DNA of 64,000 bases, taken from positions 434,001 to 498,000 of the forward strand of contig NIVC01000029.1 of assembly GCA_002269645.1 (NCBI GenBank), in the 5' to 3' direction. The DNA comes from Macrostomum lignano. Its lineage: Eukaryota. How positions within the stretch are numbered: position 1 is the first letter of the stretch; the number at the start of each line of letters is the position of its first letter. The notes under the pieces are model-generated. The model was not told the origin of the DNA, did not search any database, and saw only the letters and a list, made by a program, of their open reading frames with translations. Shown one piece after another: positions 14,001 to 63,344 of this stretch. The position numbers and the translations under genes were made by a program.

Positions 14001-14769
14001 CACCACTTCAGCACACTGTGACTCATCACATTCTTGCCATTCTATTCTTAGCAACTAATACTGAAATAAAATTAACCGTAAAATGCAGCGAGAGTCCTGG
14101 ATGGAGGACAGTGACGAATCGCTATACTCTGACAGCTCAATGCCAGATGGCAGCACTCAGCCAGCAAAGCACCAAATGCTGCCAATATTTGAGGTATTGC
14201 TCAATTTAGTAGGACTTTCTTCAAATCACTCAAAGCATTTCATTATTGATGCATTACGGATCCAGTGCTGAATTATTGTTTTTGCTGATTATGAGCTCGA
14301 TTTTTTTGATTAAATTTCTTTTAACTCAATTCAATTTTGTTATCAAAGTAGCCAAATAACTGGCCAAATTAAATCAAGGTTTGAGGCACGGCAATTGACA
14401 ATCACACCCGGGGAGGGCCAACCTCCCAAGGCGCACAGAGTGTACATGTCCTGACGATTAGAAAGTTAGCGCAGCTGTACACCCCATGTGAGCGTGTGCG
14501 ATGCCCACGAGTCAGCAGTCTTTTGTCTATAATAATTAGAGTTATCAATTCAATTTCATTCTTCCAGCGTTCGGTTAGCCAGAGCAGCCACCTGCTGTCG
14601 GGACTTCCATCGGGATTTCGGAACAGCACCCTGGCGAAATGGTTCTACGAAGGTGAGCGGCCGTGGGTGCCAGTTTGACTTCCTGTGCTGCATGGTTGTA
14701 ATGATTTTTATGTGCCTTTTTAAGGTGAATAGACAGACTGGTGCTTAAACAGACAGACAGACAGGCGTC

Positions 14770-14872: not shown

Positions 14873-17800
14873 CTCAGACAGACAGAAAGACAGACAGACA
14901 GACACTCTGACAGACAGACAGACACTAAGACAGACACTAAGACACTAAGACAGAAAGACAGACAGACAGACACTCTGACAGACAGACAGACACTAAGACA
15001 GACAGACAGACAGACACATAGACAGACACACAGACAGACAGACAGACAGCCAGACAGACAGACAGCCAGACAGACAGACAGCCAGACACTAAGACAGACA
15101 GACAGACACTCTGACAGACAGACAGACAGACAGACAGACACACAGACAGACAGACACACCAAATTCATGAAATACCGAAATTTACCGAAATTTCTGTCTG
15201 CTCAAATGCATGAAATTTGCTTGAATATTCATTCAGTAAGTCTATCGTACCGTGTTCAGCGTCGCTACGCTGTGTAGCCGACATGGGATAATCTCACCCC
15301 TTATAAAACGTTATAAAATCGGCCCTGTTGTTGTCCATGGTTCCTGCTGTCCATGGCCGTCAAGAATTTCTAAGAAACCTGTTCATAGACCGTAAAGTGC
15401 TTTACTAGTTTCAATCATTCGTTGATTCTAAAATAACTCCGCACCAGGTTCCCACGGTCTGTCTGCTCACCTGACTCCGAAACTGTCGCGCAGTTGCCTT
15501 GGTTACAGAGATTTACTAACCAACCCAACAAGTCTTCAGGTATTGTCGCGTTTCCCAACAATGTCTTTGAAGATACGCTTGTAATTTCGCATGGCTGCCA
15601 TAATCCCGGATTCCTTTAGCGACGCGTTTGTCACTTTTGCACCTTAATGACTAGCTCGTAACTTAGCGATATGTACGTGATTGTAGCCGGTGGTAAATAT
15701 GGTTTAACCTTAATAGTGCACAACTGTAGCTATATTTTTCTAAGAATTAGCTCGTAATCAATTAATTTGTTAATAATTGGTAATCATACAAAATTATTAA
15801 ATAATGCAACCTAAAAACATAACTTGTCTCTCTTTTAAAAAATTGTGTTTTGTTAGAAATTCACTAAACTCCCCGCCTGTAGAAAATTGTTTAATCGCTT
15901 AAAATTCTTTAATCTTAAAATCAAGCAATTTTTTAGACCTATAAGTTTCAATGGTCGTGTTTTGGCTTTTTGTAGCTAATTTACATTTATTGCGCTTATT
16001 GACTATGCAGCATGTTGAGCTCAAACGCGCTAATTAACATAAAAACTAACTTTATTTATTTTCAATTGACTTTAACAAATTAACAAATTGTTAGTTAAAA
16101 GACTAAAAATAGCATCCTGTAATTACATTCGAATTAACATTCGTTAATTTTAATTAAATGACTTTACAATGATAAATGAATTACAATTGCAGGTGCAGGT
16201 CAATTCAGCTTAGCTAGCAGCTTGCAGCCAAAACTGGCTTCATCCTGTGCTGCAATGCAGGACGGATGGTGCGCTGCCGCTCAGGTACTGACTGGCATTG
16301 CCAGCAGCGCGTCTCACACGGATATATAATACATATTAGTCAACCTGTAGATTTTGTTCCCGCGGTTTGGTTAGCAGTTGAAAACAGACAGTTTAATTAA
16401 CTAATCACTTAAAGTTTTTGTCTGGTGTTTTTAAAAGTTAATAACAAAAAAATTTACCCTGTGCTTTAGCAAAATGGCAAAAAGCTAAACATTTAAACAA
16501 AACAGCAAAATGTTTTACCGGAAACCTCAACTTTAAATAATAGCTAGTGAAATTTTATCAATATCGTTTCATTGATCAGTATATTAATGTTCGAATTTTC
16601 CGGAAATATTATTGAAGACTGAAATTCATAACGTCGTTGAAATGCATTTTTAACTAGTATATTAGCTATATGTAAGTCTTCTAAACAAAAGTTTGTAATC
16701 GTCACTTAGGTTGCGATTATCCCCGCAGTGTTGCCACACCGGCGAATTTTAATCGCTGGGCGATTTTAAATAGCTGAGCGATTTTTTTGTCATATTCAGC
16801 AATTTTCAGCGATGTTTTATTCCTTGGGGTAGAATCCCACCCCCCAGAATTACCCCAGAATCGTAAGATTCTGGGGGTAAGAATCGTGAGATTATGGGGT
16901 GTAGAAATCGTAAGATTCTGGGGGTAAGAATCGTGAGATTCTGGGGTGTAGAAATCGTGAGATTCTGGGGTGTAGGAATCGTGAGATTCTGGGGGTAAGA
17001 ATCGTGAGATTCTGGGGTGTAGGAATCGTGAGATTCTGGGGTGTAGGAATCGTGAGATTCTGGGGTGTAGGAATCGTGAGATTCTGGGGGTAAGAATCGT
17101 AAGATTCTGGGGGTAAGAATCGTGAGATTCTGGGGGTAAGAATCGTGAGATTCTGGGGGTAAGAATCGTGAGATTCTGGGGTGTAGGAATCGTGAGATTC
17201 TGGGGTGTAGGAATCGTGAGATTCTGGGGGTAAGAATCGTGAGATTCTGGGGTGTAGAAATCGTGAGATTCTGGGGTGTAGGAATCGTGAGATTCTGGGG
17301 GTAAGAATCGTGAGATTCTGGGGTGTAGGAATCGTGAGATTCTGGGTGTAGGAATCGTGAGATTCTGGGGTAAGAATCGTGAGATTCTGGGGTGTAGGAA
17401 TCGTGAGATTCTGGGGTGTAGGAATCGTGAGATTCTGGGGTGTAGGAATCGTGAGATTCTGGGGTGTAGGAATCGTGAGATTCTGGGGGTAAGAATCGTG
17501 AGATTCTGGGGTGTAGGAATCGTGAGATTCTGGGGTGTAGGAATCGTGAGATTCTGGGGGTAAGAATCGTGAGATTCTGGGGGTAAGAATCGTGAGATTC
17601 TGGGGTGTAGGAATCGTGAGATTCTGGGGTGTAAGAATCGTGAGATTCTGGGGTGTAAGAATCGTGAGATTCTGGGGTGTAGGAATCGTGAGATTCTGGG
17701 GGTAAGAATCGTGAGATTCTGGGGTGTAGGAATCGTGAGATTCTGGGGTGTAGGAATCGTGAGATTCTGCATGGGGTGTAGGAATCGTGAGATTCTGGGG

Positions 17801-20800
17801 TGTACGTGTAGGAATCGTGAGATTCTGGGGGTAAGAATCGTGAGATTCTGGGGTGTAGGAATCGTGAGATTCTGGGGGTAACAATCGTGAGATTCTGGGG
17901 GTAAGAATCGTGAGATTCTGGGGGTAAGAATCGTGAGATTCTGGGGGTAAGAATCGTGAGATTCTTGGGGTAAGAATCGTGAGATTCTGGGGGTAAGAAT
18001 CGTGAGATTCTTGGGGTAAGAATCGTGAGATTCTGGGGGTAAGAATCGTGAGATTCTGGGGGTAAGAATCGTAAGAATCGCAACTTGCGAATATATTATT
18101 GATTAATTTAAAAAATTAGGATAACTCAAGTCTAAACTCTAAACTTTAAACTTCAATTTTAATTCAGTGAACTCTTAATTAGCTACCTCTAAAATGTTTG
18201 CTAATGAATTTTCCTTGAAAGCACGTCAAAGTAATTTCTAGGCTTCCTCTAAACAAAATGGCTTCAACTTTCAAATTCCTTTTCAAGTAGTTGAGGTTAG
18301 ATAGTTAATTGAAACTAAATTGCACCCTTTAGTTTTCCTTTGTCTTAGTGGGTGGCGGTTTTACTCAAGTATTTTCAAGAATTTTTTAGTTCAGCTAACA
18401 ATTATTTTCCCCATGAAGTTAGCAAAACCTTATTTTGCATATGCGTAATTTAAATATATTTCATTCATTGTATCATACAAGTAAATAAATTTGTGAAGCC
18501 AAAAACCTAACTAACTATTAATCGTTTTGCTGTTATGCTACTACTCGTGAGTAACAATTATGTTAAATATTATATTTTAACCTTTTTCTAATTTCAGCTA
18601 AAGTTTCAATAACTAACTAACAAATTATATGTGCAGATATACAAAATCATAAATATGCTAACAACAACGACAGTGTTATTGGAAAAATCTGCTTCCAATA
18701 AAAATTTTAAAGTTCATAAGACGATGAAACTAAGAGAAAGGCTTAATAATTTACTTTATAATTTCCAACCTAAATTTAAATCCGTTTCCTAAGTTATTCC
18801 AACTAAATAAAGACGACCGCGCTTTTACCGTTACTGTTTTACTCGTTAACTAATCAATGAAGTGCACTGTTAACCCAACTGCCGCCCACCCGTAGGTACG
18901 TCCAGTTCCGTCGCGTATTGAAAAATTGTTGCATCTGCAAAAGTGCACCCTAATGCCAGCCGACCTGCGTGAGTTCGAATCTTATTTCTCAACTGGGTGA
19001 AGGATTATTGATTCGGTGTGGGATTGATAGAAACTGTTGGGGGGGGGATTCAATATTTTCATGTCAGAAGATTAGATCGAAAGAATAGCGTGAGAAGATG
19101 GGATCAAATATTATAACGTGTGGAGATGAGATCAAAGATTCTAGTGTGAGGAGATGAGATCAAAACATTATAGCGTGAGAAGATGAGATCAAAGATTCTA
19201 GCGTGAGGAGATAAGATCAAAGATTCTAGCGTGAGGAGATGAGATCAAAACATTATAGCGTGAGGAGATGAGATCAAGATTCTAGCGTGAGAAGATGGGA
19301 TCAAAGATTATAGCGTGAGAATATGGGATCAAAGTTTATAGCGTGAAAGTGGGATCAAAGATAGCATGAGTATGGAGTCACTCTCAAGGCAAGGCAAGGT
19401 GAACTAAATGAAAATGAGACTAGGTACATCATGTACTTCGGTACGCACATCGCCGGCCACATCTGCAGCCGTAACCGTGTTGGATCGCTTCGTTCGACTC
19501 TGCTTATTCGACGGCAAAGGCCCCGTGTCCAACGTGCTCACCGTTCGAGCCATGCCAGCCAGCAGAAACGACGACAGAGTCTGGAATTTTGCCAGCCGTC
19601 TGGGCGACTCAACGCCCGGATTAGAGTTTGGAGAGCTGTACCTCAGGTACAACTACGGTCCAAATCATGTCTGCCTCCTGCTTGAGGCCACCATCGTCTG
19701 CCCTGAGACCGCAACTTTGGGACAGCAGGTGAACTGTCCTTGTTAGTTTTTTAGTTTAGAAGGCTGGAGGCTGTGTGCATTCCACCGATTCCCCTGAGCA
19801 GGCGCACAAGCGCAAGATACGTACGCAGTCATACGCACAGGTACATACTCACACAGGAGTGTACAGCAGGGCATGTACACCTCACTGTGCCTTCGGAGGG
19901 GATGGCTCTCAAGGGCGTTAACTACACGAGCAGTGCCAAGCCGAGATTCCAATTCAGCCCCAAATTAATGTGACTGCACTTGGAATCGAGCCTGGGCCGC
20001 AGGTTCGCCTGACTGTGTTTGGCAATCTGCCTCTACAACCACTCTCAGTCTCAGAGCCTCTCAATTCACTCTCTCACTGAACTGGAACGAATAATCAATC
20101 AATTTTATTCACCATTCATTCCTTTCCAGCCAACTGGAAATGAGAAACTCGTCGAACTGAGCATTGGTCACGTGACAGTTCCTCTATTCGACGATAACGG
20201 CGCTCCTTTGCCGCCAAAGTAAGTGAATTAATATACGATCCCTTTAAAATTTGAAGTTTTTCAATGTATTTTAACTAGTGATTAAATAAATTTGATTTAG
20301 AATTAGATTGCACTGCTTTTATGCGGAGATTGCAGGCACAACTGCGCTCCTCCAATTGGCAGAGCAGTGGCTCATTTCAGCAGGTACTGCAATTTGTCGA
20401 AGGAAGACATCAATTGGCATTAAAATTTCACATTAGGATGATGCATTTAGCGGGTTTCTTAAACAAGTCTAAGAATAAAAGTGCATGCATTCGTTTCTCT
20501 TGGTGAATGCGCTTCTCAAAAAAACGCTTCTCTTGGTGAATGCATGTTAATAGAATAATATTGATCATCATATTTGAAAGCCTGCATCATTTTTTGGCTT
20601 CATTGACATTAGGAGTTTGTAAATAAATGTGTACTTTTAATCTATCGCCTGTCATTTACTTACTAATGACACGAAATGTCATGTCCATGTACGTGTCTCG
20701 TATTGTTGACGCCTACAGTAGTTAAAACAAAATCAATGGTGGAGCCAAAGCAAACAGAATGGGGTGGACATTGCGAATAGCACTACTGAAAGTGTCAAAA

Positions 20801-24397: not shown

Positions 24398-25190
24398 CAA
24401 GAAACTGTTTAGCGAACAGAGAAAAAGTAATGAAAAACTATTCTCTGTATACTATAAGTAGTAGACTGTCGATCAGTCGTACTAGTTTTTTTTCAAACTT
24501 TTATTCCTTCATATTTTTTGTAACTCTCTTCACACCAAAATACTTTGTTGTGTTTGTTCTAAATCTGCATTCCCTATCGAAATTCTAGTGATGATTTTTT
24601 TTGCGATGATTTATTACTTTATCCAAATATGTACACATAGCAATATTATTCATATTTTAAAATTTAATCATAATCAAAGATTTATTTGAGTTAAAAAAGT
24701 TGTCAAAAGTCAAGCAGCGGGTTTTGTTGAGAACGGATTAGGTACATTGTTTCTTATAAAATATTTTAATGTTTTTTTATACAGAACAGCCATTTTCTAA
24801 GACACTAACTTTCCCGATTTTTGATTTTTAAATCTGATCTCTCGATTCTATTTTTTCGCCTGGCAAGACATTGATGTGAATTAAAGTCTGCAACTGTAAA
24901 ACACCTTCTATAAAAAAATTAAATTCTTGATTTGTTACTTTTTAAATATTTTAAAAGTAAAACAACAACAAACCTCTACAACTGTTTTATTTCTCTGGTC
25001 GTTAAAAAAACTAAAAAATAAATAGCTCGCAAGTGTTACGCGGAGAACATAAAAACAAAATGCGTATTGACATTTCTTTTCGAAATTGAATGTTTATTGA
25101 GTTAAGAAAAATGATAGCGCCAGTCGGTGGTACAGTACACTACAGAGAGTTTATTTAGGCGGGCTAGAACTATAAGTCATAAAAATGATC

Positions 25191-25877
25191 TCACTGAGCA
25201 ATCTGCTCAATAACCCAGTCAGGGTTGGCGCAGAAGGTGAACCTATTGTCTACTGGCGTGCCCTCAACGAATCGCGCGTAGGTCAGCCGCACGTTGCCGA
25301 CCTCCTTGGAGTTCTCGTAAAACTCGAAGTGATTCGGCTCCACCTTGAAGAGCAGCATGGACTCTGGCGGCGGAATCTTGGAGTCCTTGTACTGGGCCAG
25401 CTTGTGCCTCAGCTCCTGGAATTTCTCCTTGAACTCTGAGTCGATCACCTTGCTCTGGTTGGAGTCGATAGCGCTGAAGTAGCACTTCAGGTCTGGCGTG
25501 AACATCTTCTGGAAGTAGCTGTTGATCACGTGACGGTCTCTGATCATGGAAGTCTCGCCGGCCACGGTCACGTGACGGCCGATTGGCAGCCAATCAAAGT
25601 ACAGGCAGACATTTTTATTCTGCGATATTTGGCTGCCCTTGCGGCTGTGCAGGGTGGACAGGAACAGAAAGGAGTTGTCGCAGACGTCGGCGAGCTGCAT
25701 GGGCCGCTGCGATGGCGTCATGGACTGCGGGCAGGCCGTGGCGAGGACGAAGGTGTCGGCGTTGCCGAACTGACCGCATCTGGCGGCGTCCTTCTGCCAG
25801 CGGCGGAACAGACAGAACGGCTGCGAGAAGCCGCGGCTGATCGCGTCCTTCGGATCGCGGATGGGCTTTGTGTGCGG
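25191..25877 (-). CDS. Divergent PNPO-like protein, terminal coding exon, copy 2 (inverted paralog of 1250-1936)
   Basis: 687 bp; acceptor CAG at 25880-25878; translation identical to copy 1; 4 synonymous differences. The 5' exon was not identified. Confidence 0.8.
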   Translation of the reverse strand, partial: PHTKPIRDPKDAISRGFSQPFCLFRRWQKDAARCGQFGNADTFVLATACPQSMTPSQRPMQLADVCDNSFLFLSTLHSRKGSQISQNKNVCLYFDWLPIGRHVTVAGETSMIRDRHVINSYFQKMFTPDLKCYFSAIDSNQSKVIDSEFKEKFQELRHKLAQYKDSKIPPPESMLLFKVEPNHFEFYENSKEVGNVRLTYARFVEGTPVDNRFTFCANPDWVIEQIAQ

Positions 25878-26420
25878 CTGCGGAGGGTGAAGCGGGTGCG
25901 GAGGGTGAAGCAGGTGCGGAGGGTAAAGCGTGTGCGAATATTTGAAGCGGGTGCGGAGGGTGAAGCGGGTGGGAAGGGTAAAGCGGGTGCGAATATTTGA
26001 AGCGGGTGCGGAGGGTGAAGCGGGTGCGAAGGGCAAAGCGGGCGCGGAGGGTGAAGCGGATGTGGAGGGTGAAGCGGGTGCGGAGGGTGAAGTGGGTGCG
26101 GAGGGTGAAGCGTGTGCGAAGGGTAAAGCGGGTGCGAATATTTGAAGCGGGTGAGGAGGGTAAAGCGGATGCGGAGAGTGAAGCGGGTGCGAAGGGTGAA
26201 GCGGGTGTGGAGGGTGAAGCGGATGCGGAGGGTGAAGCAGGTGTGAAGGGTAGATTGGGTGCGGTGGGTGGAGGGTATAATGGGTGAGGAGGGTGAAGCG
26301 GGTGTGGAGTGGGTGTAATACCCCACCGATCGGGTGCGGTGGGTGGAGAATATAACCTGTAAGGAGGCAGGAGGGTGAAGCGGGTGTGGAGGGTATAATA
26401 GGAGAGGAGGGTAAAGCGGG
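25878..26420 (-). repeat. Same 18-19 bp minisatellite family as 25-1249, shorter and decaying away from the exon
   Basis: Reverse-complement units such as CGGAGGGTGAAGCGGGTG and CGAATATTTGAAGCGGGTG. Confidence 0.92.
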
Positions 26421-32030: not shown

Positions 32031-33668
32031 TAGGGAGAGTCAGAGACAGAGGCCAGAGTTTGCCAATACATGTTTTAGAGTCAGCCAGACATTGCCTAAC
32101 ATTCTGTGCAGCACCCCAGCCAACAAGATCAATGTTTGTCTCAAATTCTAATTTTACACGAATGTGTTCCATTTTATGTTTACCTTTACCCTAACTATTA
32201 ACAAGTTTTTGTTTGAGTATGACTTTAGATTTTAGAATACATGCAAAAATAGTTCTGGGATTGGAATTTCCTGGGTTCAAAATCTGCAGGTTTCAACAGC
32301 TTGTTAGGCCTATATATACAAATAGGCCTATAGGCTTTATATACAAATATTATTATTTGATATTAGGCCCTATGAACTTTAAAAAATTAAATATTAGTTT
32401 TTATATAGTATTTTATAATGTTTTTTACCTAATAAGAATGGCTAGATAGATTGTAAAAATTATATTTTTATAGACAAAAAAGTAGCAAAAATAGTAGCAA
32501 GTAGCAATAAATAAAATGACTATCAATCTATAGCTAGACCTGATAAAAACATGATTATATTTTTAAATTGTAAGGTATTTTATTTTTAGGCTCATTTTAA
32601 GCTTTTGATAAATTTTAAATGGAGCTTAGCCCTAGGCTAGGCATAGGCCTTATTTTACTTTTATTTTTATTTAAGTCTTTTCAACTTAGTATTAGACTTC
32701 ATAATGAACTAAAAACAGTTAAAAACATTAAAATTTATATATACAACTTATTTTATAAGACCAAATGTTTCTAAAAACATACTTATTTATCTTAAATAGG
32801 CCTATTAATCATTAATAATACTAGTCCTTTGGCTATTGCAGCCATAGTCTAGACTGCCAAATACCACTAGTATGTCATACTGTGTCTGCATTGCTAGAGG
32901 TAAATCTGCAATAGATAGTCTGCAATAATGGTGATTGGCTACAATAAGGAATACTAGAAAGTCTAATTGTATATAATAAACTTTAATGACAAGCAACCAA
33001 GTAGCAAGTAATATTATAAATTTAGTAATATTTATTAATAAAGGCCTAATATTATTGTCTTAGGAAGTAAAGCCTAGTTTGCTATATTTTTATTAGCAAT
33101 GGTTATTTGTATTGTATATATACAAATATCTATACATTTGTATATATAGTCCATCCAACTATACTAAATGTCTAAGATTTTCTTGTACATCTATATTTAT
33201 AGTGTTAGCAAGAAAAGGATGAATAAACTTAAAAAGTTTCCATATAATATCAGATAGAATCGATATTTTGGATTAGGTAAAGATTATTGCTTAAATTTGG
33301 ATCATACATATGCACCCCCCCCCCTAGATTTACACTGGCCATGCAACTTACTTTTTGACCAAAATTTGACTTACCTGTGAAAGAAACCCAAAGTGAAAAT
33401 TAATGGAAATTTACATAAATGGCAGGAGTAACTATGACTGTCTTATTAAAGCTAAATGCCTCGTCATCTAATTAGTACTACGTCTTTTGGGTGGGCATTT
33501 TTGTGACTTACCCCTCCCTGGTCTACCACAATTGTGGCCAGATCGGTCAGGTCGACCAGTAGTTGTGCATGTATGATATTTTGGATCCCATTGCCTCTAA
33601 TAGTATAATTCCTCCTGTTTTGTACAGTGACCCATGTATAGCTTACAATATTTGATGTCATTATTTTC

Positions 33669-36600
33669 ATGAAGCCAACACAAGCAATGAGCGGCAGCTT
33701 AGCAGCTGACGCTAACAATCCACAGGCTAAGACGCCTCAGTCATCAACATTTAAGCAACGTCGTTCAGCTGTCAATCAATCAAATCTCAGTCTATCTGAT
33801 TCTGTTAAAAAGTCGAAAAAACGCAATTCCATGGCTAAAGCTGGCCCAGTGCCAAAGATGAGCTACGCCATGGCTTTGAAACATATTGTTGGCCCGATGC
33901 CAAGGGGTGCAGCTGATTCTAATCAGCCAGACCCAGCTTGGCTACACCAGCGACAGAAACGGCCGCGCCAGCAGCAGCAGCCGCCTAGAAAGAAGGCTTC
34001 TCGCCGATCCAGCATTCGAGTTCGAGGACGCGGACCGAACGATGCAGCTCGAACTCCAGTTGCTATTCGTCAGGCTGGCGCAATGTCTACTGGCCACGCT
34101 CTGTCGCCTCCAACTTTGATTGTTGGCTCAAAGCAGCCGGCTAAGCAGCAGACAAAGCAGAAACTCTCAATAGTTGCTAGGGAACCTAACGTGACCCCTA
34201 CTGATGCCGCTGGTACTAATACTACTAATGCTAGTAGTAAAACACCGCCTCCACCAACTCCGGCTTCGATATTGAACAAAAAGAAACGAATGACTTGGGC
34301 TCAACAGTTGCACTCGCCTGCGGCTAAGCCGCCTCAAAGCGATCCCGCCGAACCTCCGCCAAATTCGGCGCTGAGAAAGTCGATCCTAGTTCGACGAGCA
34401 GTGATGGGAGCCGCTGCGAAAGCTTCTAAGCAACGTGCCGATGACGGGCCTGATATTAATAATAAGTCTCCCGTTGTTATTAAAGTTAATAAAACACCGA
34501 TTGCTACTGCTAGTAGTAATCAGTCTACAAGCTCGTCGGTTTCTATGCTAACTATGGCGCCAATTGTTGTTGCTAATACGCCAGACAGGGCTGCTGTAAC
34601 TGCTGCCGGCAATGAGTCAACTGCACCAGCGGCTGATAATAAACGCCGACGTTCCTCTGTAGCGGCCGCTAAATCGTTGAGAAAGTCGAAATCTATTGGC
34701 AAGGTATGTTGAAGTATTATAAATACTTATCAGGTTTAGGAGCGGGAAGATTTATTTAGACACAGATGATCCCATCTTAAAATAAGTACCTGGATAATTC
34801 TGCTCGAAATTTAGTGTTTCATCAATAGATCGCAACTGTTTCCACTAAGATATAATTTAATAGCCTTAGACAATTCCAATCCTCAATTCAATACCCCTTA
34901 AAGCTTTCTAAGAGTGAACTAATCCATGAATTCTGTTCTAGAACTATATTACCCCTAAGATAATCCCGTCAGAGATTTGATATTCTTAAAGAATTCCCTT
35001 CGAAATTTATTACTCCCGAGAGAATTCCATCCTAGATTTATCACTCCTAGAGATTCCCTCCTAGTTTATTAGTCCTAGAAAATCCCCGCCTAGTTTATTA
35101 GTCCTAGAAAATCCTTGCCTAGTTTATTAGTCTTAGAAAATCCCCGCCTAGTTTATTAGTCCTAGAAAATCCCCGCCTAGTTTATTAGTCTTAGAAAATC
35201 CCCGCCTAGTTTATTAGTCTTAGAAAATCCCCGCCTAGTTTATTAGTCCTAGAAAATCCCCGCCTAGTTTATTAGTCCTAGAAAATCCCCGCCTAGTTTA
35301 TTAGTCCTAGAAAATCCTTGCCTAGTTTATTAGTCCTAGAAAATCCTTGCCTAGTTTATTAGTCCTAGTAAATCCTTGCCTAGTTTATTAGTCCTAGAAA
35401 ATCCCCGCCTAGTTTATTAGTCTTAGAAAATCGCCGCCTAGTTTATTAGTCTTAGAAAATCCCCGCCTAGTTTATTAGTCTTAGAAAATCCCCGCCTAGT
35501 TTATTAGTCCTAGAAAATCCCCGCCTAGTTTATTAGTCCTAGAAAATCCCCGCCTAGTTTATTAGTCCTAGAAAATCCCCGCCTAGTTTATTAGTCCTAG
35601 AAAATCCTTGCCTAGTTTATTAGTCCTAGAAAATCCTTGCCTAGTTTATTAGTCCTAGAAAATCCCCGCCTAGTTTATTAGTCTTAGAAAATCGCCGCCT
35701 AGTTTATTAGTCCTAGAAAATCCTTGCCTAGTTTATTAGTCCTAGAAAATCCTTGCCTAGTTTATTAGTCCTAGAAAATCCCCGCCTAGTTTATTAGTCT
35801 TAGAAAATCGCCGCCTAGTTTATTAGTCTTAGAAAATCGCCGCCTAGTTTATTAGTCTTAGAAAATCGCCGCCTAGTTTATTAGTCTTAGAAAATCGCCG
35901 CCTAGTTTATTAGTCTTAGAAAATCGCCGCCTAGTTTATTAGTCCTAGAAAATCCCCGCCTAGTTTATTAGTCTTAGAAAATCCCCGCCTAGTTTATTAG
36001 TCCTAGAAAATCCCCGCCTAGTTTATTAGTCCTAGAAAATCCCCGCCTAGTTTATTAGTCTTAGAAAATCGCCGCCTAGTTTATTAGTCCTAGAAAATCC
36101 TTGCCTAGTTTATTAGTCCTAGAAAATCCTTGCCTAGTTTATTAGTCCTAGAAAATCCTTGCCTAGTTTATTAGTCCTAGAAAATCCTTGCCTAGTTTAT
36201 TAGTCCTAGAAAATCCTTGCCTAGTTTATTAGTCTTAGAAAATCGCCGCCTAGTTTATTAGTCCTAGAAAATCCCCGCCTATTTAATACTCCTACCTACA
36301 GAATTCCCTCCTTTTTTATTACCCCGGAGAGCATTCCCGAGACTTAATATCCCGATAGAATTAATACCCTCTAAAAATTCCATCTGAGAATTATTACCCC
36401 CTAGAAAATACCCTCCAAGATTTAATACTTCATGAAGGATATATTGCGAGATTTACTGCTCACTAAGAGTTTTTACGAGTAGTGGTTTATTACCCCAATA
36501 ATTTTTTCTCCTGATCTCGCAGGCCCAGCCGAAGATGACCTACGCCATGGCTTTGCAACGCGTCGCCGGGCCAATGCCCCGCAGCGCTATGGCTTCCACC

Positions 36601-39600
36601 ACCGCTGCCGTCAGAATTAGGACTAAGCAATATCAACAGCAAAAACGTCGCTCAAAAAAGCAGCAGCCTCAACAAGCCGGTAAACGGCCTGGGCCGCCCA
36701 TGTCGACGCTAGAACAACCGACCGCCCCGCCGCCGGCTAAACTGCCTCGACTGTCGGCGACCACGGCATCGACAGCAACAACTAGCGATTCCGGAGCTGA
36801 GGAATCAGCGACTAAGCAGCAACGGCCAGTAGGAGGAGGTCCACGACGAGGCAAAACAACCGGCGTTTTGGCACGCTCGAAAAGTCTGGCAACTAGCGGA
36901 CATCTGGCTGCTGCGGCTCACGCGTCTCGCCCTGCCGCTTTGGTTGTTTCGCATCTGCGTAAATCTGTTGATAGCGGGGTTAGTCAGGTGGTCGTTAAGA
37001 CGCCTCGGGATAAGACGCCTGCCAAGGTACCTGTGGAGAAGACACCCGCCAAGACACCACGGGACAAGACGCTAGCCAGGACACCCCGAGACAAGACACC
37101 TGCCAGGACACCCCAGGACACGACGCCTGCCAAGACAACCCGGGACAAGACACCTGCCAGGACACCCCGGGACAAGACACCTGCCAGGACACCCCGGGAC
37201 AAGACACCTGCCAGGACACCCCGGGACAGGACGCCCGCCAAGACACCTGGCGAGAAGACGCCCGCCAAGACACCTGGCGAGAAGACGCCCGCCAAGACAC
37301 CTGGCGAGAAGACGCCCGCCAAGACACCTGGCGAGAAGACGCCCGCCAAGACACCTGGCGAGAAGACGCCCGTCAAGACACCTGGCGAGAAGACGCCCGC
37401 CAAGACACCTGGCGAGAAGACGCCCGATAAGACACCTCGGAACAAGACGCCCGTCAAGACACCTGCTGCGATGGCATCAAGGGACAAGACGCCTTCCAAG
37501 ACACCTAGCGAAAAGACGCCCGCCAAGACACCTAGCGAAAAGACACCCCGGGACAAGACGCCTGCCAAGATATCAGGCGAGAAGACGCCCGCCACAACAC
37601 CTGCTGAGATGGCACCCAGGGACAAGACGCCTGCCAAGGTACCTGGGAAGAAGACCCCCGCCAAGATACCTAGCGAGAAGACACCCCGAGACAAGACGCC
37701 CGCCAAGACACCTGGCGAGAAGACGCCCGCGACAACACCGTCTGCGATGGCACCCAGAGACAAGACGCCTGCCAAGACACCCCGCGACAAGACGCCCGCC
37801 AAGACACCTGGCGAGAAGACACCCCGCGACAAGACGCCCGCCAATACACCTGGCGAGAAGACACCCCGAGACAAGACGCCCGCCAAGACACCTGGCGAGA
37901 AGACACCCCGCGACAAGACGCCCGCCAAGACACCTGGCGAGAAGACACCCCGCGACAAGACGCCCGCCAAGACACCTGGCGAGAAGACACCCCGCGACAA
38001 GACGCCCGCCAAGACACCTGGCGAGAAGACACCCCGAGACAAGACGCCCGCCAAGACACCTGGCGAGAAGACACCCCGAGACAAGACGCCCGCCAAGACA
38101 CCTGGCGAGAAGACGCCCGCGACAACACCGTCTGCGATGGCACCCAGAGACAAGACGCCTGCCAAGACACCCCGCGACAAGACGCCCGCCAAGACACCTG
38201 GCGAGAAGACACCCCGCGACAAGACGCCCGCCAATACACCTGGCGAGAAGACACCCCGCGACAAGACGCCCGCCAAGACACCTGGCGAGAAGACACCCCG
38301 AGACAAGACGCCCGCCAAGACACCTGGCGAGAAGACACCCCGCGACAAGACGCCCGCCAAGACACCTGGCGAGAAGACACCCCGAGACAAGACGCCCACA
38401 AAGACACCTGAGCACAATAATACGCTCTCCAAGTCACAGTCTGCCAGCACTAGTAAAGCGGTCGCAAACACAGCCGACACCCTCGCCGTCCCTGAAAAGC
38501 CGGCCAATCGTCAGGGACGAAGCCGAAAGCGCAAAGCGGCCAGAGATGCAGAGAACTCGCCAGCTGATAAGCAGCATCAGCAACAACGAGTTGCTCCATC
38601 TTCAAACTCGTCGTCTCCTTTGAGACTGTGGAATCCGGCTAATGATCCCGTCGATGAAGTACCGCCTTCAACAAAGACTATGACGAAGAGCAGCAAGCAA
38701 AAAGCTAAAGTAGTTTCTGTCGCTAAGTCGGTTAAATCGACAAAAACTCGCACGAACAGCAAGGCCGTTGCTAAGGACGCTATTGATTCGGAATCTGAAG
38801 TTGTTGGCAAGGCCAATTCAACCGTCGTCAAGAAAAATTCGCGTCAAAAACGACCCGTCGGCAAGAAACCGATTGTCGGAGAACTGGCTCAACCAGCGCT
38901 TGGCAATTCGACGCGTCAAGCCGCTACGGTTGCTATGGACGCTATTTATAATGCTGCCGGTTCAAAGCATACGATTGCCATGGCAACCAACACGGCTCCT
39001 ACTAAAAATAATTCGCGTCGTAAAGCGGTTGCTAAGCAACCGAGAGAGCCGGTTGTTGCTGATGTCGAAGAGTCGATTGCTAAGATCGCAGTGGTTGCTA
39101 ACGAAATCCAATCATCTGATACCGTCACTAAAGCTAATAATAATAAGCGTCTTCGCAAGCCAATAAGCACTGAAGACAAGACTTCTTTGGCTGAGGTTGC
39201 TAAGGACGCTACAAGGTCCAGTCGAGCCATTCCAGCGGCGGAACTCGCTGCTCAGCCTGAAATCGTCGAGTCGGTCGTCGAAGACGCCCCGGTTGGTCGT
39301 CGAAAGCGACGGGCGGCAGCGCCGTCTACGAAGACGGCGGCGTCGAAAAAGTCCCGCCGCAGCGCCGCTAGTAAGACCAACGAGATTGCTGTAGAATCAA
39401 GGGAGCCGATTGTTACTAAGGAGGTCGTTGTCAAGGAGACGGTTACACGCGGCCGCGCCAAGCGAGCCATGACTGTTGCAGACGATACGGAATCGCCAGC
39501 TAAGAAGCCGCGTCGCGGCGCAGCCAGAAAAGCAGCTCCTGTTGCTAAGGAAGCTCCAATTGATGCAGAAGCTCCTGTTGCTAAGGAAGCTTCAATTGAT

Positions 39601-40368
39601 GCAGAAGCTCCTGTTGCTAAGAGGGCTCCAGCTGCTAAAAAAGCGGCTGCTACTAAGGTACCTCCTACGATCGAAAAAGCTCCTGTTACTGAGGAACCTT
39701 CCGTTGCTAGGAGGGCTCATGCCACACGTAGGGCGGTTGCTAAGGAAGCTCCTGTTTCTGGGGAACCTTCCGTTGCTAAGAGGGCTCCTGCTACAAGGAG
39801 GGCAGTGGCTGCTAAGGAAGCTGCTGTTGCTGTGGAAACTTCTATTGCTAAGAGAGCTCCGGCTACGCGAAGGGCTATGGTTGCTAAGGAAGCTTCTGTC
39901 ACTAAGGTCAATACTGTTTCAAAGCAGTCTCCGGTTGCTAAAAATGTCACTAGTGCCAAGAAAGCTCCCGTCACTAAGAAAGCTGCCGTTGCTAAGGAAG
40001 CTCCCGTCACTAAGAAAGCTGCCGTTGCTAAGGAAGCTCCCGTCACTAAGAAAGCTGCCGTTGCTAAGGAAGCTCCCGCCACTAAGAAAGCTGCCGTTGC
40101 TAAGGAAGCTCCCGTCACTAAGAAAGCTGCCGTTGCTAAGGAAGCTCCCGTCACTAAGAAAGCTGCCGTTGCTAAGGAAGCTCCCGTCACTAAGAAAGCG
40201 GCTGTTTCTAAGAAAGCCGCCGTCACTAAGAAAGCCGCCGTCGCTAAGGAAGCTCCCGTTGCTATGCCAGCTGTTCGAGCTAAACGAGCCGCTGCCAAAG
40301 TCGCAGAGGAGGCCATTATAGTTTCAGCTGAGGCTAGAGTGACGACCAGACGCGGCGGTCGGAAATAA
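33669..40368 (+). CDS. Large basic disordered protein (about 1626 aa) with Ki-67/RepoMan-like motifs, KTP repeats and an H1-like Ala/Lys tail
   Basis: Exon 33669-34703 (AAG|GTATGT) joins exon 36523-40368 (CGCAG|GCC) in phase 0. Motifs STGHALSPPTLIVG and SILNKKKRMTW...PPNSALRKS; (KTPAKTPGEKTPRD)n; (KKAAVAKEAPVT)n. The gene model is solid; the family assignment is inference. Confidence 0.85.
35040..36290. repeat. 29-bp minisatellite in the intron of the Ki-67-like gene
   Basis: Unit TAGAAAATCCCCGCCTAGTTTATTAGTCC, about 43 copies. Confidence 0.95.
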
Positions 40369-55528: not shown

Positions 55529-58500
55529 ATGGAGGTTGACATCGGCATGGGCGATGGGGGCGGCGGTGGCGGCGGCAGCGGCCGTGGAGCCAGCTCGCCC
55601 AACAGTCGGCTGCACTACCAGTCTGAACGGCACCCCAGGGCGAGTCTGGATGCCCTGCACTGGATGCGAAGGCAGCAGGTGTGCCAGCCGATGGTTGCTG
55701 GGCCAGCCTCCCAGAGTGTCAGTTGCTGGGCCAGCCTCTCAGATCCTCAGTTGCTGGGCCAGCCTCCCAGATCCTCAGTTGCTGGGCCAGCCTCCCAGAT
55801 CCTCAGTTGCTGCGCCAGCCTCCCAGAGTGTCAGTTGCTGAGCCAGCCTCCAAGAGTGTCAGTTTCTGGGCCAGCCTCCCAGAGTGTCAGTTTCTTGGCC
55901 AGCCTCCCAGATCCTCAGTTGTTGGGCCAGCCTTCCAGTGTCAGTTGCTGGGCCAGCCTCCCAGATCCTCAGTAGTTGCTGGAGGGGGGGGGGTAGCATC
56001 CCAGATCCTGAGTAGCTGTTGGACCAGCCTCCCAGATCCTCAGTTGTTGGGCCAGCCTTCCAGAGTGTCAGTTGCTGGGCCAGCCTCCCAGATCCTCAGT
56101 AGTTGCTGGAGGGGGGGCAGCATCCCAGATCCTGAGTAGCTGTTGGACCAGCCTCCCAGATCCTCAGGATCTGCAAATCTCCCAGATGCCTGCAATGACC
56201 ACCAATATAGATCTGTAATACTCTACTTTATTCTATTATTCCATTCACCCTATGTCTACCAGGAGCTCTGCGACGTGGCCCTCCTAGTTGGCAGTCGTCG
56301 AATCCACGCGCACCGAGCGGTGCTGGCTGCCAGCTCCCCCTACTTCAGGGCGATGTTCACCGGCGAACTGGCCGAAAGTCGTCAGCCCGAGGTGACGCTT
56401 CGAGACATGGACGAATTGGCTGTGGAAAGCCTTGTAGAATTCTGCTATACGGCTCACATTATTGTGGAAGAATCAAATGTACAAACCCTTCTGCCGGCTG
56501 CCTGTCTGCTTCAGCTGCAAGAGATTCAAGAGGTCTGTTGCGAATTTCTAAAGCGCCAACTCGATCCTAGCAACTGTTTAGGCATCAGAGCCTTTGCTGA
56601 CACCCACGCCTGTCGTGAACTATTGAAAGTGGCGGAAAGATTTGCCCAGTACAATTTCGTTGACGTCACAGAGTCTGAAGAGTTCTTGTTGCTACCCGTC
56701 AATCAGCTGATCGATATGATCGGCTCGGATGAATTGAATGTGCGCAGCGAAGAGCAGGTCTATCAGGCTGTGATGGCCTGGGTGAGGCACAGTCTACCGG
56801 AGCGGAGACAGCATCTGCCTCTGGTCCTGTCGCATGTGCGACTGCCTCAGGTGTGTGTTGTTTGGCTTTTTCCGGCCTTTTCGTTGTTTTTAGTAATTGG
56901 TTTTTAGAGTCTCAGTGAAATGCTCTCCGACAGTGATCTCTAAGATTTACTAAAAATCGTCCTTTAACTACTCAAAGAATCGCCCCTAAACGACCCTAAG
57001 AATCGCCCCTAAACCAACCCAAGAATCGCCCCTAAACCGCTCCAAGAATCGCTCATAAACCACCCCAAGAATCGCCCCTAACCCACCCCAATAATCGCCC
57101 CTAAACCGCTCCAAGAATCGCCCATCGCCCCTAAACCGCTCCAAGAATCGCCCCTAAACCGCTCTAAGAATCGCCCCTAAACCAACCCAAGAATCGCCCC
57201 TAAACCGCTCCAAAAATCGCCCCTAAACCGCTCTAAGAATCGCCCCTAAACCAACCCAAGAATCGCTCCTAAACCACCTCGTAGAATCGCTCCTAAACCG
57301 CTCCAAGAATCGCCCCTAAACCAACCCAAGAATCGCCCCTAAACCAACCCAAGAATCGCTCCTAAACCAATCCAAGAATCGCTCCTAAACCACTCCAAGA
57401 ATCGCCCCTAAACCACGCGAAGAATAGTCCCTAAACCAAACAAAGAATCGCCCCTAAGCCACCCTAAAAATCTTTCCAAAACCACACTAAGAATTGCACC
57501 TAAACCATTCCAAGAATCGCCCCTAAACTACCCTAACAATCACCCTTAAACTATCCTAAGAATCGTTTTTAAACTACCCTAAGAATTTCCCCTAAACTAC
57601 CCTAACAATCACCCTTAAACTATCCTAAGAATCGCCTTTAAACTACCCTAAGAATTTCCCCTAAACTACCCTAAGAATCGCCCCTAAACTAGCCTAAGAA
57701 TTACCCCTAAACCACGGGAAGAATAGCTGTTTCTTAAAATTGTTGTTAAACTATCTTTAAAACTAACTTAGATTCCTAAGAAAATCCTTTTAAATGTTGG
57801 CATTTTTACTTTAAGTAGTTAGTTGTGGACAGTCTCGCACACAAATATTCTTTTTATTCTACGCGCAGATGTCGCCAAAATTTCTAGTCAACACGGTCAG
57901 TTCGGACCTGCTCATCCGCGGCAGCGAACCCTGTCGCGATCTGGTAGACGAAGCTAAAAATTATCTGCTGTTGCCGCAGGAACGCCCTCACATGCAGGGC
58001 CCTCGGACTCGACCAAGGAAGCCGCTACGTTGCGGCGAAGTTCTGTTTGCCGTCGGCGGTTGGTGCTCCGGCGACGCTATTAACACTGTTGAACGATTCG
58101 ATCCGACTCATTCCGGCGGCGAATGGCGTCTGGTAGCGCCGATGAACAAGCGGCGATGCGGTGTTGGAGTAGCCGTTCTCAACGATCTCATGTACGCTGT
58201 TGGAGGCCACGATGGACAGAGCTATTTGAACTCGGTCGAGAGGTGAGCTTGGGAAACTGTCTCAAATATTTTGGGTCTTTAGGGATTTAGAGTATTAGGT
58301 ATTTGGGGTGTAGGGGATTTGGGAGTATTAATGATTTGGAGTATTGGGGATTTGGGAGTATTGGGGATTTGGGGTATTGGGGATTTGGGGGTATTGGGGA
58401 TTTGGATGTATTGGGGATTTTGGGGTATTGGGGATTTGGGGTATTGGGGATTTGAGAGTATTGGGGATTTGGGGTATTGGGGATTTGGATGTATTGGGGA

Positions 58501-59773
58501 TTTGAGAGTATTGGGGATTTGGGGTATTGGGGATTTGGGGTATTGGGGATTTAGATGTATTGGGGATTTGGGGTATTGGGGATTTGGGGTATTGGGGATT
58601 TGGATGTATTGGGGATTTGAGAGTATTGGGGATTTGGGGTATTGGGGATTTGGATGTATTGGGGATTTAGGGGTATTGGGGATTTGGATGTATTGGGGAT
58701 TTGGATGTATTGGGGATTTTGGGGTATTGGGGATTTGGGGTATTGGGGATTTGAGGTATTGGGGATTTGGATGTATTGGGGATTTGAGAGTATTGGGGAT
58801 TTGGGGTATTGGGGATTTGGATGTATTGGGGATTTTGGGGTATTGGGGATTTGGATGTATTGGGGATTTTGGGGTATTGGGGATTTGGGGTATTGGGGAT
58901 TTGGATGTATTGGGGATTTGAGAGTATTGGGGATTTGGGGTATTGGGGATTTGGATGTATTGGGGATTTAGGGGTATCGGGGATTTGTATGTATTGGGGT
59001 TTTAGGGGTATCGGGGATTTGTATGTATTGGGGTTTTAGGGGTATCGGGGATTTGTATGTATTGGGGTTTTAGGGGTATCGGGGATTTGTATGTATTGGG
59101 GTTTTAGGGGTATCGGGGATTTGTATGTATTGGGGATTTAAGGGTATCGGGGATTTTGGGATATTAGGGATTTAGGGAATATTGGGAATTTTAGGGTATT
59201 TGGAATTTAGGGGTATTGGAGATTTGAAGATATTAGGGATTTAAAGGTACTAAAGAATTGGGCGTCCCTGTCTCCTGATGGGCGATCTAATCCCTATTTA
59301 CGGGAGCTCCTGTCATTCAACGTTATGTATTGTTTCCCTTTCCATTCAGTTTTTGGAGCAGGTCACATTGTCTCACCGTGTATCCATACCCCCCCCCCTC
59401 ACAGATACGATCCCCAGCTCAACCAGTGGTCTGCCGACGTGGCCCCAACCAGCTCCTGTCGCACATCTGTCGGTGTCGCCGTTCTAGACGGAGCAATGTT
59501 CGCCGTCGGCGGTCAGGACGGCGTCTCGTGTTTGAATTACGTTGAACGCTACGACCCGGGAGTGAACAGGTGGACCAGAGTGGCCAGTATGTCTACCAGG
59601 CGTCTGGGAGTTGGGGTGGCTGTGCTGGATGGCATTCTGTACGCTGTTGGTGGCTCGGATGGTCAGCAGCCTTTGCAGACTGTCGAACGGTAAGCGGCGG
59701 GCTTTGTTTGGGCATGTGTGCATGTGTTAGATAAACAGATGGATAGATAGATAGACAGATAGATGGGTGGATT

Positions 59774-60380: not shown

Positions 60381-60948
60381 GCTACACGGGACCAAAGCCA
60401 ATGAGAATGGAGAATCAGAGCCAGACTAAACAGTTACCAACGGGAACCCTCGCAGCTACGATCCCCGCGCCAACCGCTGGATGCAAGTGGCCAGCATGAC
60501 CACCCGCCGCAAGCACCTTGGCGTTGCCGTATTTAACAACTGCATCTACAGCGTTGGCGGCCGCGACGACACCACGGAGTTATCCAGCGCCGAGTGCTTT
60601 GATCCGAAGATGAACTGTTGGCGTCCCGTGGTTGCCATGACATCCAGACGAAGCGGGGTCGGCCTGGCGGTTGTAAATAATCAGTTAATGGCTATTGGTG
60701 GTTTCGACGGATCGACCTATTTGAAAACTGTGGAGATCTTCGACACCGACTGTAACTGCTGGAAAAGCTTCGGCAGCATGAACTCTCGCCGACTTGGCGG
60801 CGGTGTTGGCGTCGTGCGTCTGGCTCGACTGCACGAGTCGCCAATGCTGATTGGTAGTCACGACTTTTTCGGCGGTTACGGCGGGCCAACAACTTCGTCT
60901 AATGCTAATTGGATGCCAAATTCGGCTGATAGAGGGTTTAGGAAATGA
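55529..60948 (+). CDS. KLHL20: Kelch-like protein 20 / diablo (BTB-BACK-Kelch CUL3 adaptor), 5 exons, about 629 aa
   Basis: Exons 55529-55678, 56263-56850, 57869-58242, 59405-59689, 60456-60948, phases 0,0,2,2. Long stretches match recalled KLHL20: [83 protein letters not shown]. Confidence 0.95.
55690..56190. repeat. About 28-bp minisatellite in KLHL20 intron 1
   Basis: Unit GTTGCTGGGCCAGCCTCCCAGA(TCCTCA/GTGTCA). Confidence 0.9.
56960..57720. repeat. About 25-bp minisatellite in KLHL20 intron 2
   Basis: Unit AAGAATCGCCCCTAAACC(GCTCC/AACCC). Confidence 0.9.
58275..59250. repeat. G-rich 15-17 bp minisatellite in KLHL20 intron 3
   Basis: Unit GTATTGGGGATTT(GG/GGAT/GAGA). Confidence 0.93.
59733..60375. 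repeat. (GATA)n/(GACA)n microsatellite in KLHL20 intron 4
   Basis: About 640 bp of GATA with GACA interruptions. Confidence 0.97.
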
Positions 60949-61093
60949 CTGCCGTGTTGTACATTGTGCATACATTTATTGCTGCAGTCTGTTTGTGCCT
61001 ATTTGAAAATAATGTCTTTTCATGCTTGAGAGAATGTACTTTTAAGGTAATTTATGTCCCAATGGACTAATTTTTTTAATGCACAAATAATGC

Positions 61094-61925: not shown

Positions 61926-62619
61926 AACTGTACGGTTTATTTTCTGTACTAAATATTTTTAATTCAAACAATTTACTTGGTTTAACTTAACCTACTTTGA
62001 GTAGTTTGCTGGCTAGCTAGTTTTTACAGTAGCCTGTCTTTCTCTGTCCACCCCTAGCACTATTAAAACGGTTTTTTAATTAATATACCCCTACTTAAAA
62101 TGAATATTTGTTTAATATTTGTTAACTAATACTAATTTACAATCTGACCTGTAAAAGACTAATAAGTAACCTAGTTAAGATTTTCCATTCTATGGTATTA
62201 GATTCTTTGCATGCTACTCCATAAGTAGTAGTTTTTGTATAGGGCGTTCATAATTTATTTCGATTCTCATATATTCAGAGACATTTGATATCTCCAATTG
62301 AATAAATATCAATTGACTTGCGTATGCATGCAGATGATTATTCAAATATTTTACAAAATATACAAATGTAATCTGATTAAAAAATTTGTATTATATAAAA
62401 CAATTGATAAGTTTATACTCGTATGTGCAGTACGGAATACTTTGATTTTTGAAAAATGCTCTTGGTTTCTTTGAATCTCAGTTCGCTTAGTTATTTAGTA
62501 AAAAAAGTCGTCAATATATCGATAAAAAAAATTTTTTACGCTTACCTACTTGAAGTAGCAAAAAAAGAATTTTACAATCGGAATTAGCTTTTTCCCCAAA
62601 AATATTTAAATAATTTCAG

Positions 62620-63159: not shown

Positions 63160-63344
63160 GTGAGAGATGTCATCATCAAACTCGTCATTACATTATACAA
63201 AACTTTTCGGAATTGGCTTGAAAAAAAATACAAACTGAAAAGTGTCACATAAAATCACATTTAGAATCGCCGTTCTTTAAAATTGGTTCTAAATCTTCTT
63301 TTAAAAGACGCCTTTAAATCCCCTTGGTAATCGCTTCTAAATTT

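Follow-up and report, generated by a model that had tools for sequence, protein, structure and literature searches.

A Macrostomum lignano gene for a predicted disordered, basic protein that carries the Ki-67 conserved-domain core and probably shares ancestry with Ki-67

Full-length Ki-67 (MKI67) proteins measure 2,000-3,300 amino acids (aa). RepoMan (CDCA2), a PP1 recruiter that associates with chromatin and is largely disordered, is not known to carry the conserved-domain (CD) core of Ki-67, and the [ST]PxK-type motifs of linker histone H1 and of SPKK sperm nuclear basic proteins bind DNA and are phosphorylated by CDK. From its first mention onwards, the function of the Ki-67 CD has been given as unknown, and papers of 2016 and 2026 continue to describe it in this way (PMC4841783, PMC13649782). 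In June 2026 non-vertebrate homologues of Ki-67 were reported, all of them found by means of their FHA domain, in a preprint that does not mention the CD (bioRxiv 10.64898/2026.06.18.733134). Here we describe a plus-strand gene at 33669-40368 of a 64,000-nucleotide stretch of Macrostomum lignano DNA (contig NIVC01000029.1, positions 434,001 to 498,000; the whole stretch is called the window, and all coordinates count from its first letter). An initial annotation had proposed this gene as a highly diverged orthologue or analogue of Ki-67. Our reading, to which we assign a probability of about 0.6, is that it encodes a disordered basic protein that shares ancestry with Ki-67, has neither an FHA nor a recognisable PP1 domain, and contains a duplicated CD module. 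The CD signature and the class of protein common to Ki-67 stand from the earlier proposal, whereas its PP1 domain was not recognised.

The evidence that carries this reading is the CD core STGHALSPPTLIVG (34086-34127, + strand; aa 140-153), an exact fit to the pattern [ST]TGHAxSPxTφφφG. A search seeded with a human N-terminus gave a vertebrate reference of 28 Ki-67 N-terminal sequences (P0001-P0028), from mammals to sturgeon. In these, SWAD[VI]VK is followed about 48 aa further on by STGHA[ND]SPxTI[VI][VI]G, the counterpart of STGHALSPPTLIVG, and KR[KR]RVSFGGxLxPELFDxxLPPN[TS]PL is located upstream of this SWAD[VI]VK/CD module; the vertebrate motifs that the initial annotation had used for comparison are therefore present in database sequences. 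When a profile of the CD module built from vertebrates only was used, the first coding exon of the candidate (exon A) ranked first of the 1,853 six-frame open reading frames (ORFs) of the window, with an independent domain E-value of 0.0028. Its score with the CD hidden Markov model (HMM) was 21.5 bits, against a maximum of 16.3 among 20,000 composition-matched shuffles, none of which reached it, and the hhalign comparison of the CD gave P=2.8e-6 (0 of 400 shuffles). With a CD profile that included metagenome loci of invertebrate type and excluded the candidate, exon A was again at the top of the 1,853 ORFs (23.1 bits, E=7.6e-6); the runner-up had E=4.1. The pattern itself is expected by chance about 1e-4 times per Gb of six-frame translation. 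Chance is excluded as the source of the CD core, and the resemblance of STGHALSPPTLIVG to the Ki-67 CD, first noticed by eye, was borne out by the profile, hhalign and shuffle tests. Since convergence on 12 constrained CD positions is also unlikely, the gene most probably shares descent with Ki-67.

A comparison from beyond the vertebrates was provided by a degenerate DNA pattern for the CD core, searched across a very large collection of metagenome contigs. It returned 28 loci (L001-L028), all of which encode [ST]TGHAxSPxTφφφG, with no false positives. In 11 of the 28, PP1_bind was found 1-4 kb upstream on the same strand, with E-values from 4e-20 to 5e-16; the remaining 17 have at most 2.2 kb of upstream sequence, and every locus with at least 2.6 kb upstream carries the PP1-binding domain there. 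The order PP1-then-CD was present in each of the 11 checkable Ki-67 loci. Contig L017 goes from Ki-67-type FHA exons to a 1,615-aa S/T-P-rich repeat exon that ends with HLGVSFGPDMSPELFDRRLPPMTPIKRG and ..KTLWSEVVKR.., and from there to the CD exon. After the CD, L007, L012, L018 and L019 encode a GEMFVSPL motif and G[VI][KR]xLMKTPK repeats, with a basic tail beyond the repeats in L007, L012 and L019. Taken together, the contigs with large parts of Ki-67 genes (L017:371-11405, + strand; L019:6487-854, L012:10951-7424 and L007:12670-4819, - strand) show, in this order, FHA, a long exon of S/T-P repeats, the PP1 domain, an LWSEVV[KR] box, the CD exon, GEMFVSPL, G[VI][KR]xLMKTPK repeats and a basic tail. 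This pooled order implies that conservation of the CD module and of Ki-67-like repeats extends far outside the vertebrates, and by these sequences the CD core is an old and highly specific part of Ki-67 genes that bear FHA and PP1 domains, always 3' of the PP1 domain. The near-unchanged state of its 14 residues, from vertebrate Ki-67 to invertebrate-type metagenome genes, together with its survival in the candidate, which has no FHA and no canonical PP1 dock, points to a strongly selected interaction. A variant locus was also seen on L027 (844-1, - strand) and L008 (674-2, - strand), where the W-containing box reads PLFSEILKK, with F for W, and the core is STGHANSPETFIIG; its ATPKAATPK repeats, directly after the CD, are the nearest in style to the KTP array of the candidate. 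No close relatives of exon A were found in the metagenome search.

The locus harbours a real protein-coding gene, whose coding sequence is split over two exons. Two open frames of the + strand, 33642-34709 (first ATG at 33669) and 36502-40365, form one gene, whose spliced product (exons 33669-34703 and 36523-40368, both junctions in phase 0) comprises 1,626 aa. Exon A (33669-34703, 345 codons, in a frame open from 33642) ends with ...ATT GGC AAG, directly followed by GTATGT (donor GT at 34704-05). It has no in-frame stops, against 17 and 38 in the remaining two frames, and its GC content is 0.50, compared with 0.31 upstream. The intron (34704-36522, + strand, GT...AG, phase 0) has 54-58 stops per frame and a GC content of 0.37, and most of its 1.8 kb is occupied by a 29-nt minisatellite at 35031-36294. 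Exon B (36523-40368, + strand, 1,281 codons and a TAA stop codon at 40366-68) begins after an acceptor reading ...ctcgcAG and shows no in-frame stops across 3.8 kb, of which about 2.4 kb are non-repetitive. The whole coding frame is free of stops over 4.9 kb, the other frames having up to 38 per segment, and the GC content of the exons is 0.50-0.64 against 0.28-0.37 in the intron and flanks. In addition, the second copy of an internal duplication straddles the exon junction, beginning in exon A and ending in exon B. The gene model is well supported by these open frames without stops, the contrast in GC between exons and flanks, the canonical phase-0 GT-AG intron and the duplication across the junction.

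As minisatellites throughout the window yield long ORFs in several frames, and the TP array of the candidate is open in several frames on both strands, we considered a non-functional locus, with long frames that are by-products of tandem repeats, or a decaying pseudogene copy. This is very improbable given that some 3 kb of coding sequence outside the repeats are open in a single frame, which has no stops where the others have up to 38; moreover, the exons are distinct in GC from their flanks, the splice sites are canonical and in phase, and the CD core is intact. The single open frame of the non-repetitive sequence led us to reject an ORF created by repeats.

The descent from a Ki-67 ancestor proposed here has to be weighed against a considerable number of results that speak against it. 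Statistically, the connection with Ki-67 is secure for one motif of 14 residues, and masking it drops the hhalign signal to background; the flanks of the CD module showed no significant similarity to the metagenome Ki-67 loci with block profiles, and in pairwise alignments they performed no better than shuffles. Pfam searches of both exons gave no PP1_bind (PF15276), K167R or FHA at E<=10, the only sub-threshold match being a chance one to LbH_EIF2B. No FHA better than E ~1 was found in any frame of the 64-kb window by three independent searches, namely tblastn with a human FHA, an HMM of 21 vertebrate Ki-67 FHA domains, and an HMM plus tblastn to which the FHA exons of L017 were added. The PP1 domain is near-invariant from sponge to human, and its V, F, G, P and FD residues are missing from the corresponding stretch of the candidate. 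With a pan-metazoan PP1 profile of 20 sequences, sponge to mammal, drawn from database entries and the supplement of bioRxiv 10.64898/2026.06.18.733134, the candidate scored -3.5 bits, a value that 8,052 of 11,158 scored shuffles equalled or exceeded. The candidate has neither the GEMFVSPL motif nor the G[VI][KR]xLMKTPK repeats of L007, L012, L018 and L019. Its post-CD region and tail gave marginal, not significant, values against L007 (9 of 300 block shuffles) and L019 (14 of 300) and no similarity to L012, and its C-terminal end was not significantly similar to the Ki-67 ends in L007, L012 and L019. Finally, aa 1-509 had 0 matches in protein databases, both by word-indexed search and by exhaustive phmmer. 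This last negative counts little: no Ki-67 longer than 1,335 aa was returned, so long proteins seem to be missing there. In the same line, a database search with the PP1-domain profile returned only fragments of at most 81 aa, and author names were the sole matches of a literature search for the motif strings.

The absence of a significant Ki-67 alignment outside the 14-mer, together with the missing family-defining FHA and PP1 domains, would fit a basic disordered nuclear protein unrelated to Ki-67 by descent, such as an SPKK/TPKK H1-like protein, a sperm nuclear basic protein or a nucleolar phosphoprotein, in which the CD peptide arose by convergence or accident. Low-complexity KTP, AKK and TRR sequence, too, is a frequent component of H1 tails and of nuclear proteins of sperm. 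We nonetheless regard an unrelated protein as quite improbable, considering how rarely the pattern is expected by chance, that all 28 of its metagenome matches were true CD cores, and that 12 constrained positions are unlikely to converge. Furthermore, the motif sits in a long, basic, S/T-P-dense protein like the reported non-vertebrate Ki-67 homologues, a joint PP1-like remnant adjoins the CD core, and Pfam detected no linker-histone globular domain.

The initial annotation had assigned 34266-34382 to a PP1-binding region with SILK-like docking. This assignment failed with Pfam, with the vertebrate profile and with the pan-metazoan profile, and the peptide SILN does not fit the SILK motif [GS]IL[RK]. 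In the window, the vertebrate PP1-domain HMM gave the candidate E=11, no PP1_bind signal was detected anywhere in the 64 kb by profile searches, and a phmmer search of the PDB with the PP1-like stretch gave no match. The Ki-67 PP1-binding domain comprises RVxF, φφ and the KiR-SLiM FDxxLP(P/A)N(T/S)PL(R/K)(R/K)G. The canonical RVxF motif, [RK]x0-1[VI]{P}[FW], is absent from the whole protein. What is present is SILNKKKRMTW (34266-34298, + strand), a basic stretch with a relaxed RVxF-like KRMTW (aa 206-210), the sole RVxF-like match in the protein once M is allowed at the Val position, and, 19 aa downstream of KRMTW, PPPNSALRKS (34353-34382, + strand; aa 229-238), which of all stretches of the protein comes closest to the LPPxTPL[RK][RK]G portion of the KiR-SLiM. 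Scored by a position-specific scoring matrix from 20 Ki-67 sequences, PPPNSALRKS was reached by 151 of 5,000 shuffles (p ~0.03). Both elements jointly, in the right order and 5-30 aa apart, occurred in 7 of 20,000 shuffles, in a test that was defined post hoc, after the data had been seen. From this we infer that KRMTW...PPPNSALRKS, lying between the two copies of the CD module, may be a decayed remnant of a PP1-docking region of the Ki-67 type; continued recruitment of PP1 by the candidate protein is, by its sequence, doubtful.

The internal duplication bears directly on the order of the motifs. Copy 1 (33795-33983, + strand; aa 43-105) reads SDSVKKSKK..PKMSYAMALKHIVGPMPRG..QRQKRPRQQQQP, and copy 2 (aa 334-394) starts in exon A at 34668-34703 and continues, beyond the intron, at 36523-36669 (+ strand). 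The two copies are 44% identical over 66 aligned positions (BLASTP E=2e-9), and AlphaFold2 predicted a short helix at aa 66-73 of copy 1. KMSYAMALK (33855-33881) and KMTYAMALQ (36532-36558), which had been compared with the vertebrate AKSWADVVK, are members of this duplication. The repeated segment is genuine; the match to SWADVVK, on the other hand, was not detectable with block profiles or masked hhalign, and block profiles of the W-containing box upstream of the CD core (SWAD[VI]VK or LWSEVV[KR]) do not detect either peptide. Likewise, the similarity perceived by eye between PKMTYAMAL..AGPMPRS and PKMTAAMRRRAGGTPSRS in L019 failed the shuffle test and was rejected. A putative second CD core, decayed, is found in TSGHLAAAAHASRPAALVVS (36892-36951, + strand; aa 469-488), where the CD profile aligns AAHASRPAALVVS to TGHAdSPaTIviG with 5.6 bits and E=0.0011 for that 65-aa piece alone, which is weak evidence. 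The intact CD does precede the PP1-like stretch, as had been observed; the permuted motif order claimed on that basis is better accounted for by the internal duplication, which would give CD copy 1 with the intact core, the PP1-like remnant, and CD copy 2 with the decayed core. With respect to CD copy 2, the PP1-like remnant has the canonical upstream position.

The 5' end of the gene is relevant to whether the FHA and PP1 domains lie elsewhere. A possible 3' splice site, ttcctcctgttttgtacAG (33626-33641, + strand), has its AG at 33626-27 and is followed by an in-frame TAG at 33639-41. If it is used, the upstream exons would be 5' untranslated region and the start would be ATG 33669 or 33687, so this strong acceptor with its TAG favours translation starting at one of these two codons. 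An alternative, weaker AAG acceptor at 33672-74 would permit coding exons upstream, and exon A would then be internal to an ordinary Ki-67 orthologue of which only the 3' two-thirds were seen, the FHA and canonical PP1 exons being located further upstream, outside the window or on the far side of a very long intron. Consistent with this, the AG at 33673-74 is phase 0 and follows a T-rich tract, the layout of CD, repeats and basic tail matches that of vertebrate Ki-67, L007, L012 and L019, and the PP1 domain is upstream in every other checkable CD-bearing locus. Nevertheless, we consider such a truncated view of an orthologue improbable. The 33.6 kb upstream have no FHA or PP1_bind signal in any frame; in real loci the PP1 domain is just 1-4 kb upstream of the CD; the 7 kb directly upstream are AT-rich and stop-filled, with no exon-like island; other features intervene, including a PNPOx-like ORF on the opposite strand; the stronger acceptor at 33626-27 is followed by the in-frame TAG; and the gene already has a PP1-like remnant of its own. 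The statement in the initial annotation that no FHA was found agrees with the three window-wide searches, and an FHA hidden within the window was rejected on account of those negatives.

The remainder of the protein is made up of three regions, all on the + strand. A KTP repeat array (36988-38412; aa 501-975, 475 aa) consists of KTPA, KTPRD and KTPGE units, which confirms the lineage-specific repeats previously suggested. It has periods of 27 and 42 nt and a 390-nt higher-order repeat with 97% matches, implying a recent expansion of the TP array. It is followed by a non-repetitive basic middle region (38413-39507; aa 976-1340) with several KR clusters resembling nuclear localisation signals, and by an Ala/Lys/Val-rich basic C-terminal tail (39508-40365; aa 1341-1626), which ends with RVTTRRGGRK and contains 36-nt AKEAPVTKKAAV repeats at 39954-40259. 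The long TP-repeat region, the basic tail after it and the peptides quoted in the initial annotation were all confirmed at their positions. Pfam did not match Ki-67 repeats (PF08065), and by eye the repeats of the candidate are unlike those of L007, L012 and L019, the KTP/KSP character alone being common (BLASTP E ~1e-3, low complexity). The similarity of the tail to a human LR domain was not significant. Two likenesses of the tail were rejected as they failed testing: that seen by eye between the C-terminal ends ..AIIVSAEARVTTRRGGRK and ..AIVSPRATRSRQAKR, which did not survive the shuffle test, and that seen by eye in the TR[RG] motifs.

The protein has a mass of 171 kDa and a pI of ~10.8; its 342 K+R residues (21%) against 138 D+E give a net charge of +204, with a fraction of charged residues of 0.295 and a net charge per residue of 0.125. 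There are 107 S/T-P sites, one per 15 aa, 93 of them in the KTP array, and 39 of the 107 fit [ST]Px[KR]; phosphorylation of all of them would take the computed net charge from +204 to about -10. AlphaFold2, run on aa 1-509 without an alignment, gave a mean predicted local distance difference test score of 44, with short helices only and no folded domain. The candidate protein is therefore predicted to be almost wholly disordered and strongly basic. In size, charge, S/T-P density and disorder it falls within the range given in Table 1 of bioRxiv 10.64898/2026.06.18.733134 for the Ki-67 homologues of lancelet, echinoderm, mollusc and annelid. By analogy with the disordered part of Ki-67, the basic tail would probably hold the protein on chromatin or DNA, from which the long cationic chain could reach outward from the chromosome surface. 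Mitotic phosphorylation of the TP array by CDK might then swing the net charge from ~+204 to ~-10, and such a swing could switch the interactions or the condensate behaviour of the protein.

A different role for a Ki-67-derived protein can also be conceived, namely structural packing of chromatin where cells no longer divide, as in sperm or nuclei after terminal differentiation, instead of a place in the mitotic chromosome coat, with the TP array serving its deposition or removal and not a cell-cycle switch. The parts tied to mitotic regulation are those affected in the candidate (FHA missing, PP1 dock decayed, Ki-67-type repeats absent), the Ala/Lys-rich tail is like H1-type tails in composition, and the recent repeat expansion (390-nt unit, 97%) is typical of fast-evolving reproductive proteins. 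A packing role has in our judgement a low probability, because the protein, with 1,626 aa, is far larger than sperm nuclear basic proteins known so far, ongoing selection for an interaction of the Ki-67 type is implied by the intact CD core, and the predicted charge reversal mirrors that of Ki-67 homologues. Linker histone H1 and SPKK sperm nuclear basic proteins do share with the candidate Ala/Lys-rich basic tails and [ST]PxK-type motifs; in contrast to them, it has no globular domain, is five to ten times larger and carries the Ki-67 CD core. Membership in the H1 or sperm-protein groups was rejected on the absence of a globular domain (Pfam; AlphaFold2 for aa 1-509) and on the length of 1,626 aa with 21% K+R.

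Returning to descent from Ki-67 with a duplicated CD module, the comparison with the vertebrate protein reveals a common layout of CD, repeat array and basic C-terminal region in two large, basic, disordered and CDK-site-rich proteins, and the candidate may keep a remnant of the RV[ST]F...LPPN[ST]PL[RK][RK] docking region. It differs from vertebrate Ki-67 in having no FHA, PP1_bind, Ki-67 repeats or detectable LR-domain similarity, in its duplicated CD module with the intact CD ahead of the PP1-like stretch, and in its repeats, which are KTP units of 4-5 residues whereas Ki-67 repeats have 122 aa. With the non-vertebrate homologues (bioRxiv 10.64898/2026.06.18.733134) and the L001-L028 loci it shares a length of ~1,500-1,700 aa, a net charge in the hundreds, an S/T-P site per 9-16 aa, short repeats of K[ST]P type and a reversal of that charge by phosphorylation, and with the metagenome genes also the CD core. 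Unlike those homologues, it has neither the N-terminal FHA that was the basis of their discovery nor the near-invariant RVSFGPxLSPExFDxxLPPxTP domain, and unlike the metagenome genes, where their sequence reaches, it lacks the LWSEVV[KR] box, GEMFVSPL and the G[VI][KR]xLMKTPK repeats. RepoMan resembles the candidate in being devoid of an FHA. The RepoMan-like label given to the gene at first did not hold, because the PP1-binding domain that bears the KiR-SLiM, the sole region homologous between RepoMan and Ki-67, was not recognised by Pfam or by two profiles; that reading was rejected. As the two family-defining features, FHA and PP1_bind, were looked for and not found, we do not file the gene as an ordinary Ki-67 orthologue, and infer instead that it is either a Ki-67 paralogue specific to its lineage or a Ki-67 orthologue that has been truncated and has diverged.

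A more specific proposal, which we put forward tentatively and regard as somewhat unlikely, is that the protein is a functional and naturally 'minimal' relative of Ki-67 that lost the FHA and the canonical PP1 dock and kept the CD core, the CDK-switchable array and the basic tail. Were this true, the CD would outrank the FHA as the family's most persistent hallmark, and FHA-based searches would miss a class of Ki-67-like chromosome-coat proteins. A CD-bearing protein without an FHA would be new relative to the non-vertebrate homologues found by means of the FHA, and non-vertebrate relatives of Ki-67 can be found via the CD as well as the FHA. With a core kept without an FHA or a canonical PP1 dock, the candidate would offer a simpler natural context in which to test the interaction of the CD and, if tied to proliferation, it could mark dividing cells in its host.

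The window contains other recognisable features. An ankyrin-repeat protein of 1,677 aa is encoded by a single uninterrupted ORF at 43065-48098 (- strand; Ank_2, E=5e-61), just downstream of which a 296-aa open frame without a Pfam match is located at 42132-43019. Exons of a BTB-BACK-Kelch (KLHL-type) gene lie at 56140-56904, 57815-58243 and 60430-60945 (+ strand), separated by minisatellite-filled introns, and an Endonuclease_NS exon at 62614-63249 (+ strand). The C-terminal part of an SH3 domain was identified at 12742-13086 (+ strand), beside an acidic ORF rich in Ala, and a tRNA-Glu(TTC) gene at 4131-4202 (+ strand) was the sole match of Rfam and tRNA scans. An inverted duplication (842-1937 / 25190-26309), 93% identical over 1,123 nt, carries the PNPOx-like ORF (Pfam PF01243) together with GC-rich minisatellites of 18/55 nt. 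Minisatellites are unusually dense, with at least 15 separate arrays of periods 17-55 nt and lengths 0.3-1.4 kb, for example at 21-1253, 2315-3731, 7759-8644, 13206-14020, 16857-18076, 35031-36294, 56955-57715, 58282-59242, 61093-61895 and 63377-64000. Long GATA, ACAG, TAGA and AG microsatellites are present too, and many of the repeats in the window create spurious ORFs in several frames.

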